This document shows, piece by piece, positions 7,736-24,076 of a stretch of DNA of 64,000 bases. This stretch comes from Octopus sinensis (taxonomy: Eukaryota), in NCBI RefSeq assembly GCF_006345805.1, contig NC_043002.1:54374001-54438000 (forward strand). Direction: 5' to 3'. Each line of letters begins with the position of its first letter. Position 1 is the first letter of the stretch. The position numbers were made by a program, and so were the translations under genes. Below the pieces are notes generated by a model that saw nothing but the letters and a program-made list of their open reading frames with translations, did not search any database and was not told where the DNA came from.

Positions 7736-7854
7736 CTGGGCTGATATTCCTATCAACAGAAGCCACTGTTGCTTTTCATCGGTCCGGTAGTTGATGACTT
7801 GACATCCAGCAAGACTTGAATGACGATCGAACATCTTTAGGGGTTGAGAATCTC
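7736..7854 (-). CDS. CLTC: Clathrin heavy chain coding exon 4 ([40 protein letters not shown])
   Basis: Translated by hand. Acceptor tacttttacag|GA, donor CAG|gtttgt, 119 nt, continuing the frame of exon 3. The next constitutive exon (QNRVVGAMQLYS-like) was not found in 1-7735, so the gene runs off the window. Confidence 0.97.
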
Positions 7855-9121
7855 CTGTAAAAGTATTTGATAAAAGAGTTCAAATTATTTAGAGCTGTTG
7901 ATTGTTACATGTATGAAAGTGACAGAGTTTAAAAAAACAAGACTAAAATAGAGACAAATATGACCCTTAAAAATTTGTAATGAAAAAGCACTATTCAAAT
8001 TAGCAGCTATCAAGTAAAACATTTAAGAAAAAATTTCTATTTTAATTTAAACTATTTGGTAAGTTGACTTACTGTATATACTTAAGTACAGTTGCATCTT
8101 TTACCAAGAAAATATAAAAACCACAGGCATGTGACTTATCTATGGAACATACAAAACATATACAATGTGATGTTAGCTGACAGGGCTTAATACCAATATG
8201 TGTATGACTCGTCACTATAGCTTAATCAAACACACTAACAGAAATTACATGTTTTCTAGGATTTAGACATTGGCAAAAGTAGCAGCACTGTAAGTGGTTA
8301 TTTTTGTATTGCTTGTTTATTTTTATGCCTATCACTTGGAGTCTAGTTTATAGTATTATGCCAATGTATTGTAATAGATTAAGCACTTTTATGAATGAAT
8401 ATTGAGTTGTATCAGATTTGTGCTGATAACATTGTAAAAATAAACTAAAAAAGAAATTAATAAAATTTAATATATATAAATAAAATACTGAGGCTTATAA
8501 ATTTGTGGACATCGATCATAATTGACAAGAAGTTGAAGAAAAAATAGTAGGGAGCAAACACCTTTGAAACATCTCACAAAGAGAAAAACCAAGCAGAAAA
8601 TGAAAGTCAAGGCCATAGCCCACCAGCTGGAGACAGAATCTCAGACAACAAAACTAAGTGTTAATGCAAACAAGTTACTAAAACATTGCATACTGTAGAA
8701 AACTTCTTTCTTTTTTAAATGAAATACAAAAACAGGATTTGAACTGAACTGGAAATCAAGCAAGGACTGGGGCACTGAAATCTAAATTGAAAGAGGATTT
8801 TTTTTTTTTTAATTTCAGATTGAAATTGCAAGATTTTCAATTTTTTCCATGTACATTGCAAACAAATACTTTATTGAAGGGCAAAAGATACATTTTGTAT
8901 AACTATCTTAAGAGAATATTTATTAATCTTCAGAACTACAGGTCAAGTTAATTTAATGTTTAACTTCAAATTTCAACAGAAAACTCATTAATCCCAGAAA
9001 TAATTTAAAATATTCTATTAAAATTAGTTTAGAAAATGTGTCTTTGGATTGTTTTCATTTTTTAAAAAAATATATGCATAATATATGAAGAGAACAAAAA
9101 AGGAGACAGCTGAGTATTTAA

Positions 9122-19660: not shown

Positions 19661-19725
<65 letters not shown>
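19649..19725. repeat. (TC)7 + (TA)~30 microsatellite
   Basis: Direct reading of the sequence. Confidence 0.97.
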
Positions 19726-19924: not shown

Positions 19925-21868
19925 TAGACAAGCACTAGCAATTTGGAATGCCAAAGTTCATGAAGGGAAAAGTAGAGAAGGTGGGAGAAAGTTACCTATC
20001 CAGTTAATAGCCTTTCTTCTAAAAAAAAGGTGAATGAAATTTTGTTGAAGTGTTTCATTTTTTTTAAAAATAAAAATTGTCACTAAAATCATGATTTACA
20101 TCATTTCTCCGTATTATTTATAGTCTGTGACACCATTAAGGCCTATTTTAAACCCATTATATTGTTGAATGGAGCTCGTTGAGATCCTTCTTTTGCACCA
20201 TTAATTATTTTTCTCTCCTCTCCAGATCAAAAGTTATGGAAAGAAATGAAGAAAAGGACCAAGTTGAAGATCTTGTTTTGGATCCAAAAAGAAACAAAAG
20301 ACAGGGAAATGTTTCTTACACTCTCAAGACGTATAAGATTGTAGATAATCGATTCTTGAATTTGTGGAGAGTTTCATCAAAACGAATTGACCTTGGAGTA
20401 TTACCAATGAGGAGAAGCTGGATATTCCCTCTGTACAAGCCAAATTTCATCATGAACATTTTATACCGCACAGTAATAAGAGATTTTGGCAAATGATGAA
20501 GAATGCAGATGCCATGAGCTGTACTGTGAATGTCCTTGGTTGAAGTAATAAGCTCTGCAGTGAAATCTGGACCAAATTTGTTGAGACTGGAGAAATTTCA
20601 AAGCAGAAGATGACTTGAAATTGAAATCCAAAGGCTTTGGTAGTTCCTGATCATCTTGTGACTTCCGTAATCTAGAAATTTGTCAGAGACTGACAGGTGA
20701 CTCACACTAGGACTGTTGCTCAGGATGTGATGGACTGCTGTATCAATGATTGCAATCAACCAAAGCAAGTCTAGGCAGCTCTGCGATCTGTTCAAAGATT
20801 CTGTAAGGATACTGTTGCGGAAAGAAGAAAGGAATGATGTGCTACAGGCTCCGAGCCGAGAACATTTGTAAGTGGGATCTCTATACAGTCAGATTAGTTT
20901 CTCTCAACGCAGTGAAGAAGAGACAAATTGTGTACATGGATGAAAGCTATATAACCAAAAATTATGCTCAACATGATGACAGCTTATATGATCTGAACGA
21001 TGTGCAGGACCAAGAGAAAACTCAACACAAAGTGATATGGTTTAATGTAGCCATTATTGATGCTGACTGAATACAGCATGCCAAAAAAAAAGAAGCCCAA
21101 AATGAAAATCAAGTTGCTCATTTAATGGAGGACACTCTGCATGTCTCTGTAGGAGGAAAACAAACAAAAGACTACCATGGGATGTTTAACCATAATTTTG
21201 TTGAGTGGATGGAGAAGCTCTTCAAAGCTCTTGATGACTGAAGAATTAGTAACACTGTCATTGTGATGGACAGTGCCAAATGTCATTCTAATCTCCCTGA
21301 ATCAACACCATAAGGATAGTGGAAGGTGGCTCAAATGCAGGTGGCATGTCAAGAATGAGAGATTCCATTTGAAGCAGAAGATCTGAAGTGTGTGCTATGG
21401 GAAAAGCTGAGTGAATACAACAACTACATGTCTTTCCAGTTGTTTGTTCCATGGCATGAGAAGGAGGTCATGAAGTCATCTTTTCTCCACTGCATCATTC
21501 CGATTTGCAGCTGACTGAGCTCATATGGGCCATTGTCAAAGGAGACGTGGGAAGACAGTACACCACAAACACCACTTTCGAGTAAGTGCTGGCACAACTG
21601 TATACATCATTTCAGAATCTGGAGAACAAAACAGTCCAAGGATGCATTAACATGGTTAATTCACATCTTAACAAGCTTTATGAGCATATTAGAGTCATTG
21701 AAGATGAAGTCAGTGATGGTGAAAGTGATACTTCAAGCAGTAGTGGTGAAGATAACCTCAATAAATGATAAAATACACTACTAATGACTGTTTTCTTTTC
21801 TTTTCCCTCAAAATAAAAAAAAAACATTCATAACTTTTGAACCAGAATTGCAAAACTACTGAACTATA
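19925..21868 (+). mobile_element. Degenerate IS630-Tc1-mariner transposon with DD82E spacing (Sailor-type); pseudogenised transposase about 20236-21768
   Basis: IVYMDESY (D at 20939), KDYHGMFNH, VIVMDSAKCH (D at 21269) and FSPLHHSDLQLTELIWAIVKG (E at 21517). There are 245 nt between D2 and E, about 82 codons. Many stops and frameshifts. Termini are tentative, based on a degenerate ~45-bp inverted match. Confidence 0.85.
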
Positions 21869-22174
21869 GTTTATTCTACTCATCAAATCTATATTTATCT
21901 CTCAATAACATCAAAGCATTGTGTTACAAAAACAGCCTCAATGGTGTAGCAGACTGTTAAAAAAAATAAAAATTAAACTTTTCATCATCTAACAAGGAAT
22001 TTTCATAAAACATCTCAATGTAAAGATATTAATTTTTGGGATTAAACATACTGAAGCATTTTACATTTACTGAGGAAAATGTTTTTGAATCTTCATAAAT
22101 AATCATTGATCTAGCAGCCATAGAATTATCTTAAATGTGAGAAGAGGCTGAGCTCCTTTCGAGTTTTGAATGGT

Positions 22175-22379
22175 TTTGATTGGGCTGGCACACTGGAAGG
22201 CTGTGCCAAGATCCAGTTTGATTTGGCATGGTTTTCTACAGCTGGATGCCCTTCCTAACACCAACCACTCTGAGAGTGTAATGGGTGCTTTTACATGCCA
22301 CAACTGTGATGTAAAATTTTGCTCAGCTTGATGGGTCGTCTTCCCATGCACAACATAATGCCAAAGGTCTTGGTTATTG
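22175..22379 (-). repeat. SINE (inverted partner of 22674-22999)
   Basis: Its reverse complement aligns block by block with 22718-22957. Confidence 0.88.
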
Positions 22380-22673: not shown

Positions 22674-22999
22674 GGAGGCAAAGTGGCTGAGCTTTTGAGT
22701 TTTGGGCTTCATAGAAGCAATGACCAAGACCTTTGGTATTATGTCGTGCTTGAGAAGACCCATCAAGCCAAGCAAAATCACAGTCGTGGTAGATACCAAG
22801 ATACCAGTGTCACACAATTGAGACTCATGTCAGTGGCACGTAAAAGCACCCATTACACTCTTAGGGTGGTTGGCATTAGGAAGGGCATCCAGCTAAAGAA
22901 CCATGCCAAATCAAACTGGATCCTGGCGCAGCCTTCCAGCGTACCAGCCCAGTCAAACCGTCCAATCCATGCCATCATGGGCAATGGATGTAAAATGAT
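22674..22999 (+). repeat. Near full-length SINE with RTE-type tail ending aaaatgatga
   Basis: Head ggaggcaaagtggctgag, body aagcacccattacactc..ggaagggcatccagc, and a TGA-repeat tail. Confidence 0.85.
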
Positions 23000-23001
23000 G
23001 A

Positions 23002-23277
23002 ACTGACCCCAGTACCTATTGTTTTGAAGCCCGGTACATATTCTATCGGTCTCTTCTGCTGAACTGCTAAGTTGCTGGGATGTAAACACACCAACACTGG
23101 TCGGGAAGCAGTGGTGGGGGGACAACAAAGACACACACACACACACATATATATATATATCACATCGTTCTGACCGATTTGGAGTACCTGGTTCATGGAT
23201 TTCTTACTCTACTCTTGGATTATGTTACCTTTGAAGTATGTCGTTTCTGCGCCTTTGATTTTATATATAATATACAT

Positions 23278-23310
<33 letters not shown>

Positions 23311-23455: not shown

Positions 23456-23518
23456 AAGAAAGTAAAAAGAAAAAAAAAAAATTAAGGAATCATGAGAAAA
23501 GCTAAATTCTTGACTTAC

Positions 23519-23668
23519 CTTCCATACCCCAGTGGTATACAGCTGTATCTGTAACCAGTGCAACTGTGTTGACTGAAATCCATTTCCAGAAGGTAACGTC
23601 TTCAGTCATAGTATGTGCCTTCATTTTGCTTTTCATTTCAATATTGAAAATCTGTAAAGTTTTGCCAG
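23519..23668 (-). CDS. CLTC: Clathrin heavy chain coding exon 3 ([50 protein letters not shown])
   Basis: Contained in ORF 23502..23699. Acceptor ttcaattttcag|CT, donor GAAG|gtaagt. 150 nt, phase 1/1, encoding the clathrin-box-site residues ([13 protein letters not shown]). Confidence 0.98.
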
Positions 23669-23919
23669 CTGAAAATTGAAAGAAAACAACTGAGTACAAC
23701 AGTTTTAATATAAAGTGACTTTCTAATAATTATTTAGAAAACTAATAGAGTTATTGAAGAAAAAGTAATATCTTTAGCTATTTTATGTCCACCTTTGTCA
23801 TTATTACAATCCACAATGGAAATTATAATTATTTCAAAAGCAAGCACTATTCACAAATAATGCCCATGTTTCAGGCAAATAAAAAAAGGAATGGAGCTTG
23901 CCATTTGGGTATTTTCTTT

Positions 23920-24076
23920 CTCACTTTGTAAAATGGTTGGCATTAGGAAGGGCATCCAGCCATAAAAAAACATGTCAAAACACTGGAGCTTTGTGCAACC
24001 CTCTAGCTTGCCAGCTCCTGTCAAACTATCCAACATATGCAAGCATGGAAGACAGACATTAAATAATGATGATGAT
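23920..24076 (+). repeat. SINE/RTE 3' tail
   Basis: ggttggcattaggaagggcatccagcc..ccagctcctgtcaaac..aaataatgatgatgat. Confidence 0.85.

Follow-up and report, generated by a model that had tools for sequence, protein, structure and literature searches.

Sailor transposons are a superfamily of the IS630-Tc1-mariner group whose catalytic core is of the DD82E type, with DD78E and DD111E as the extremes (Shi et al. 2021, PMC8533490). These elements are 1.4 to 7 kb long and carry short terminal inverted repeats (TIRs; classically 18 to 57 bp) that mostly start with GT or CC, together with a 4-bp target-site duplication (TSD) of the TATA type or, alternatively, TATT or TACA (PMC8533490). Their long spacer between the second catalytic aspartate and the glutamate has been derived from two ancient insertions relative to Tc1, and the study of 2021 already suggested that they are patchily distributed and move horizontally (PMC8533490). 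Of most relevance here are the Sailors of oomycetes: the Data S2 alignment of the same study includes elements of Phytophthora sojae (Ch-Physoj) and P. tubulina (Ch-Phytub) that are of the same subtype as the relic described below and have the blocks YxDESYIHHxY, DYHGMF, VMDNAKYH, and PPHYSDLQPIE in common with it. This protist-type subclade has so far been published only from stramenopiles (PMC8533490). The supplement of that study lists no Octopus, Euprymna, Sepia, Nautilus, Architeuthis, or Doryteuthis, and we found no link between Sailor and cephalopods in the literature that we searched.

The locus analyzed here lies in a stretch of 64 kb of DNA (hereafter the window), of which positions 20121-21956 (1836 bp, plus strand) very probably represent one class II cut-and-paste transposon, of the Sailor (DD82E) type within the IS630-Tc1-mariner group, that died long ago. 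It is thus an added member of a known transposon superfamily.

A clathrin heavy-chain intron contains the element

A clathrin probe detected three coding exons of a clathrin heavy-chain gene on the minus strand of the window, at 34928-34713, at 23508-23675 (residues ~82 to 137, upstream of the element’s intron), and at 7736-7864 (residues ~131 to 173, downstream of it). Their joined translations match the N-terminal domains of clathrin heavy chain in the PDB over residues 14 to 173 (E ~1e-94), and the best matches of the exons are 88% to 89% identical and indicate a metazoan host, in agreement with the animal clathrin intron that had been named in an initial annotation of this DNA. The Sailor copy is inserted antisense to the gene in the intron of ~15.6 kb between the second and third detected exons. 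These first three detectable coding exons take up more than 27 kb and the window (33% GC) has an observed/expected (o/e) CpG ratio of 0.26, so the introns are very long and the genome is strongly depleted of CpG. No open reading frame of at least 130 aa was found anywhere in the 64-kb window, Rfam gave no match, an exact search for the ORF of the clathrin exon had no result, and tblastn revealed no second copy of the Sailor element in the window, where it is therefore single-copy.

Several repeats are found near the element. A perfect (TA)30 microsatellite (19665-19725) lies 400 bp 5′ of it and an (ATAC)9 array (23272-23308) is located near the clathrin exon at 23508-23675. Just 3′ of the relic are two inverted arms of ~125 nt each (22175-22301 and 22833-22957) that are ~90% complementary and ~530 nt apart, with a third, partial copy of the same repeat 1 kb further on (23934-23982). 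These arms look like a family of host short interspersed or MITE-like repeats arranged in inverted pairs.

The transposase relic has the spacer of Sailor elements

The reading-frame relic of the transposase extends on the plus strand from an ATG at 20236 to a TGA at 21766-21768 and, as delimited by tblastn segments, falls into four parts that occupy positions 20236 to ~20350, 20355 to ~20810, ~20807 to 21418, and 21421 to 21768. Three-frame translation of 20150-21800 recovered the catalytic motifs MDESY (20939), VMDSAKCH (21269), and SDLQLTELIWA (21517) exactly where the initial annotation had placed them. Together with the alignment of relatives, it locates the first catalytic aspartate (D1) at 20939-20941 (gat, in VYMDESY) and the second (D2) at 21269-21271 (gac, in VIVMDSAKCH), while the glutamate lies 82 residues after D2 at 21517-21519 (gag, in SDLQLTELIW), all on the plus strand. 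The distance of 245 nt or about 82 residues from D2 to E that had been noted from the letters alone proved to be exact, with one 1-nt deletion accounting for the odd length. Aligned with 50 relatives, the triad of the Sailor copy reads D-109-D-82-E, and the D-E spacer is exactly 82 residues long in 39 of these relatives and 80 to 84 in the remainder, except for one truncated match.

The motifs KRQGNVSYT, ALRSVQRF, GKKKG, YAQHDDSLYD, TKDYHGMF, and VGRQYTTNTTF are all present in the relic and lie at positions conserved in the family. A stitched transposase translation of 512 aa finds 40 relatives at E <= 1e-3, the best of them (P0001) at E = 1.9e-108, so that the motif observation is real and far beyond chance. 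The catalytic piece of the relic scores only 21.5 bits against the Pfam domain DDE_3 (PF13358; gathering cut-off 28.6), which we attribute to decay, whereas intact relatives score 40 to 55 bits and thus lie above the gathering score.

The long spacer is also what distinguishes the relic from Tc1/mariner elements. These resemble it in their membership of the ITm group, their DDE_3 fold, their CAGT-type termini, and their single transposase gene between short TIRs, as exemplified by Sleeping Beauty (SB100X), but they have 34 to 41 residues from D to E/D where the relic and its colinear relatives have 82. The initial annotation had itself considered that a standard DD34E element with an unrelated insertion might lie behind the spacing, and the derivation of the Sailor spacer from ancient insertions relative to Tc1 (PMC8533490) gives the idea of an ordinary Tc1/mariner (DD34-37E) relic carrying such an insertion some plausibility. 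However, the 82-residue spacer is colinear with all 50 relatives and contains no private insertion. Moreover, the family profile aligns colinearly from D1 to E with the cores of published bacterial and mollusc Sailors (hhalign probability 99.9%, E = 1.4e-32), which shows that the long spacer belongs to the family as a whole and did not arise by private insertion into a DD34E element. A PDB search with the family profile gave a single weak match, to SB100X, and at E = 0.06 this similarity is barely detectable. We therefore give practically no credence to a Tc1/mariner origin with a later insertion.

The relic accordingly joins Sailor by its similarity to published members and its ~82-residue spacer, the tree described below having no Tc1/mariner, pogo, or Gambol outgroups, and TIRs of ~28 nt enclosing 1836 bp agree with this placement. 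The Sailor-type DD82E transposase that the initial annotation had read from the sequence is thereby borne out by spacer, similarity to published Sailors, and profile alignment.

Homologous terminal repeats define the ends

Where the initial annotation went astray is the extent of the element. It had suggested a degenerate inverted match between 19925-19967 and 21826-21868 as possible TIRs, but these intervals have an ungapped identity of 7/43 and a gapped local score of 13 and are noise. We rejected the limits 19925 and 21868, of which the first lies ~200 bp too far left and the second ~90 bp short of the end. Testing the flanks by generic local alignment against shuffles was non-discriminating in this AT-rich DNA, and we instead scanned both strands of the whole 64-kb window, plus shuffled versions, with the TIR of a closely related element on a metagenome contig (L007; CAGTCCGCGACACCATCGAGGCCGGTTT). 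The best match on the plus strand is the left TIR TAGTCTGTGACACCATTAAGGCCTATTT at 20121-20148 (left end at 20121), which agrees with the L007 TIR at 21 of 28 positions, or 25 of 28 if CpG>TpG/CpA changes are allowed, with the next match on this strand at 16. On the minus strand, the best match is the right TIR at 21929-21956 (reverse complement CAGTCTGCTACACCATTGAGGCTGTTTT; right end at 21956) with 23 of 28 positions, or 26 of 28 allowing for CpG decay, followed by a next match at 17. Shuffled sequence never scored above 19. The TIRs of intact or nearly intact relatives pair at 27/27 positions in L004 (ACAGTCATCGACAGCATCCAGAGGCCT), 26/26 in L005, and 34/37 in L002. Those of the relic are located at the expected ends and have homologs in the TIRs of L002, L004, L005, L007, and L024. 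The resulting element size of 1836 bp fits the 1.8 to 2.1 kb of the relatives.

The trinucleotide T-N-A precedes all 16 ends of 8 elements of the family (L002, L004, L005, L007, L012, L024, L057, and the Sailor copy), and each of these ends is indeed preceded by Y-T-N-A (20117-20120 and 21957-21960 in the Sailor copy). The Sailor copy has TTA on both sides, at 20118-20120 and 21957-21959, as the possible left and right copies of a 3-bp TSD. Nevertheless, the middle base of T-N-A is equal on both sides in only 3 of the 8 elements, and neither a simple TA nor a 3-bp TNA duplication could be established among them. The T-N-A ends may reflect a 3-bp duplication blurred by chimeric metagenome contigs, a target preference, or an extension of the TIR, and members of this subclade might conceivably duplicate 3 bp of the form T-N-A upon integration instead of TA or TATA.

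Following the convention of PMC8533490, the ends of the Sailor copy would be read as TATA|GTCTG (left) and AACA|GTCTG (right), as opposed to the TTA/TTA flanks obtained with CAGT-termini, and the TATA duplication of that paper is not clearly present at the flanks of the copy. Published records of Aphanomyces and of Phytophthora cambivora and P. syringae begin with TA-TTGTA..., while the lineage of the Sailor copy has CAGTC... termini. In the published Aphanomyces and Phytophthora Sailors (PMC8533490 Data S1), the “TATT” listed as TSD is inverted (TATT...AATA) and is for this reason better read as a duplicated TA to which the two initial bases of the TIR are added. The TSD of 4 bp that has been ascribed to Sailor may have to be reconsidered.

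The copy is long dead

The transposase frame is interrupted by 3 frameshifts (near 20350, 20810, and 21420) and 14 in-frame stops, several of which are found at positions where relatives keep a conserved arginine, as fits CGA>TGA changes. The CpG o/e of the Sailor copy (0.23) lies within the range of the surrounding host DNA (0.10 to 0.26), compared to 0.82 to 1.19 for the relatives examined. Stops, frameshifts, and a host-level CpG content together indicate that the copy has been resident for a long time and has been dead for a long time, and it can no longer encode a transposase. Each 28-nt TIR differs from that of L007 at 5 to 7 positions, mostly C>T/G>A at former CpGs, so that mobilization in trans is unlikely, too.

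The same data bear on whether the element belongs to an animal genome in the first place. Its relatives come from protists and metagenomes (see below), and one could suspect contaminating protist DNA or a misassembly. We consider this exceedingly improbable, because the element is flanked by clathrin exons on both sides within a single uninterrupted sequence, matches the surrounding intron in GC content (38%) and CpG o/e, unlike its relatives, and is heavily decayed.

Judging from its family membership, the active element would have encoded one transposase of ~510 to 540 aa, with a DNA-binding region at the N terminus and a D-D-E core of the RNase-H fold containing the unusually long 82-residue spacer. 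This protein would bind TIRs of ~28 bp of the form 5′-CAGTC.G.GACACCATCGAGG (termini CAGTC...ACACCATCGAGG), and its D-D-E triad would excise the element and reinsert it at a T-N-A/TA site by cut-and-paste transposition. The present copy inserted antisense into the intron of a metazoan clathrin heavy-chain gene and then underwent neutral decay, with its CpG content falling to the host level, to become the inert relic seen today.

Relatives of the Sailor copy

The closest sequences to the Sailor copy are found on two metagenome contigs, L006 (OFEW01028480.1) and L007 (OFES01013953.1), that are 97.3% identical to each other and show 66% to 67% nucleotide identity to the copy along its full 1.8 kb, noncoding ends included. 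They represent a transposon lineage in common with the Sailor copy, with the same TIR apart from CpG decay and a sister position in the tree (74% bootstrap for L007), but they are young copies with a CpG o/e of ~1.0 while the Sailor copy is decayed. Despite this CpG content, both of their reading frames are broken, and L007 has a glutamate instead of the second catalytic aspartate. Their host recently amplified copies that were already defective. The Sailor copy differs from L007 at 25% of first, 21% of second, and 48% of third codon positions, and the excess at third positions shows that the two lineages diverged while still active and that much of this divergence accumulated under selection. 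Neutral decay accounts for no more than ~20% of it.

Further environmental relatives were found in Tara Oceans marine metagenomes (PRJEB4352), in seawater, JGI, and Logan assemblies, and among foraminifer-associated unclassified contigs (Globobulimina; PJEL01). Pattern scans of viral contigs and of bacterial and archaeal genomes found no relatives of the subclade. In two relatives, P0030 (L003, 8001-9812) and P0032, the D-D-E triad is replaced by G-E-E. P0030 is located among genes for a Slo-like channel, RecA, and NPC1_N on an 11-kb GC-rich and apparently intron-poor contig and may be an inactive or domesticated protist copy.

Named close relatives are mostly from oomycetes (Aphanomyces, Achlya, Phytophthora, and Nothophytophthora). 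A search with the L007 ORF added proteins of Aphanomyces, Achlya, and Nothophytophthora, one of Salpingoeca rosetta (46% identity), and EukProt entries, but no animal-named protein was found among its best 120 relatives. The S. rosetta relative may be the single choanoflagellate species of PMC8533490. The subclade that emerges is mainly a protist one, with the motifs YMDESYIHxxY, DYHGMF, and PPHxSDLQPIE and with oomycete, choanoflagellate, and many marine-plankton elements as members, and it stands apart from the published clade of mollusc, arthropod, and bacterial Sailors.

We compared amino acid identities to the Sailor copy in a catalytic core of 201 columns and found 63.5% for L007, 51% to 54% for intact environmental proteins, 45% to 48% for oomycete proteins, 30% for a Legionella Sailor, and 24% to 27% for published mollusc Sailors. 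In a bootstrapped neighbor-joining tree with low backbone bootstraps within the subclade, bacterial and published mollusc Sailors are split with 100% bootstrap from the group formed by the Sailor copy and the environmental and oomycete elements. Within this group, the copy falls in an oomycete-free clade of 10 or more members (81%), and P0035 adjoins Ch-Physoj. The mollusc Sailors (Mercenaria, Haliotis, Crassostrea, Limnoperna, and Bathymodiolus) are of the same superfamily as the copy and have a homologous, colinear core with a spacer of 82 to 83 residues, but they differ in their low core identity and in their position with bacterial Sailors in another deep clade.

The Sailors of P. sojae and P. 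tubulina and of Aphanomyces and Achlya (PMC8533490) are considerably more similar to the copy. They share with it the motifs YMDESYIHxxY, HDDSLYDP, KGRRxCFIAAI, DYHGMF, VMDNAKYH, and GHEVxFxPPHxSDLQPIE as well as the 82-residue spacer, have a length of 1.8 to 2.3 kb, and cluster with it against the other sampled published Sailors (100% bootstrap). The differences are the limited identity of the core, their stramenopile rather than animal hosts, and the dead state of the Sailor copy.

A subclade member in an animal-like contig

Another decayed member of the subclade is found at 5711-7546 of contig L024 (JAAUXU010177171.1), likewise 1836 bp in length and with CAGTGTGCGACACCATCGATGC termini. On this animal-like contig, it adjoins split exons that closely resemble mammalian NADH-cytochrome b5 reductase 3 (CYB5R3; PDB E = 3e-56) and enoyl-CoA-hydratase-like sequences. 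The subclade therefore seems to be present in at least one other animal-like genome.

Horizontal transfer

The resemblance of several motifs to uncharacterized Aphanomyces and Phytophthora proteins had led the initial annotation to suggest that, if identity were high, the relic would record a cross-kingdom transfer. The likeness itself stands inasmuch as the named relatives are mostly from oomycetes and belong to the same subclade, but even in the catalytic core it does not exceed 45% to 48%, and marine elements are closer. A transfer between oomycetes and the host lineage could be argued from the predominance of oomycetes among the taxon-named relatives, from the sharp separation of the subclade from published mollusc Sailors (100% bootstrap), and from the patchy distribution and the lack of animal names among the best 120 relatives. 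Several observations speak against it. Identity to oomycete proteins is low, at only 32% to 42% of amino acids over the full length and 45% to 48% in the catalytic core, and marine elements are closer, with 51% to 54% of amino acids in the core and, for L006 and L007, 66% to 67% of nucleotides. The copy is not nested among oomycetes but lies in an oomycete-free clade in 81% of bootstraps. Furthermore, S. rosetta is as near to L007 (46%) as the oomycetes are (37% to 50%), and the surplus of oomycete names mirrors which genomes have annotated proteins. An oomycete transfer is thus very unlikely to be what this copy records, and with amino acid identities of 32% to 48% and no nesting in an oomycete clade a recent one finds no support; nor does the copy, being old, record any recent transfer event. 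In short, there is no evidence here for oomycete-cephalopod transfer, and the elements of oomycetes, although truly similar to the relic, are too distant from it to demonstrate one.

An ancient transfer, in either direction, between the host lineage and a marine protist that need not be an oomycete is a less remote idea, and we would tentatively entertain it while holding the opposite to be more probable. Protists and plankton supply most sequences of the subclade (Tara Oceans PRJEB4352, the foraminifer-associated metagenome, EukProt transcriptomes, and S. rosetta), the animal Sailors published so far fall in the other clade, and the difference between third and second codon positions relative to L007 (48% versus 21%) indicates that the lineages split while active. 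Conversely, L024 lies in an animal-like contig, and the subclade may be commoner in animals than is apparent from annotated proteins. Because protein annotation passes over dead copies, their absence from protein databases means little. One fossil copy cannot demonstrate an ancient transfer from protists. Together with L024, the relic could conceivably be the first sign that the protist-type subclade entered metazoan genomes by ancient horizontal transfer in the sea, independently of the Sailor clade of molluscs and arthropods, although we rate this reading as doubtful.

Significance

By itself, the relic matters little, as one neutral fossil of a superfamily that was described in 2021, and a cephalopod host, if true, would make it a new host record and nothing more. 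It also gives reason for caution, since named oomycete matches can suggest a donor merely through annotation while closer relatives are found in marine metagenomes. Its value is modest and taxonomic: the published mollusc Sailors are of a different deep clade from the subclade of the relic, and the oomycete/protist Sailor subclade has also left copies in an animal genome.
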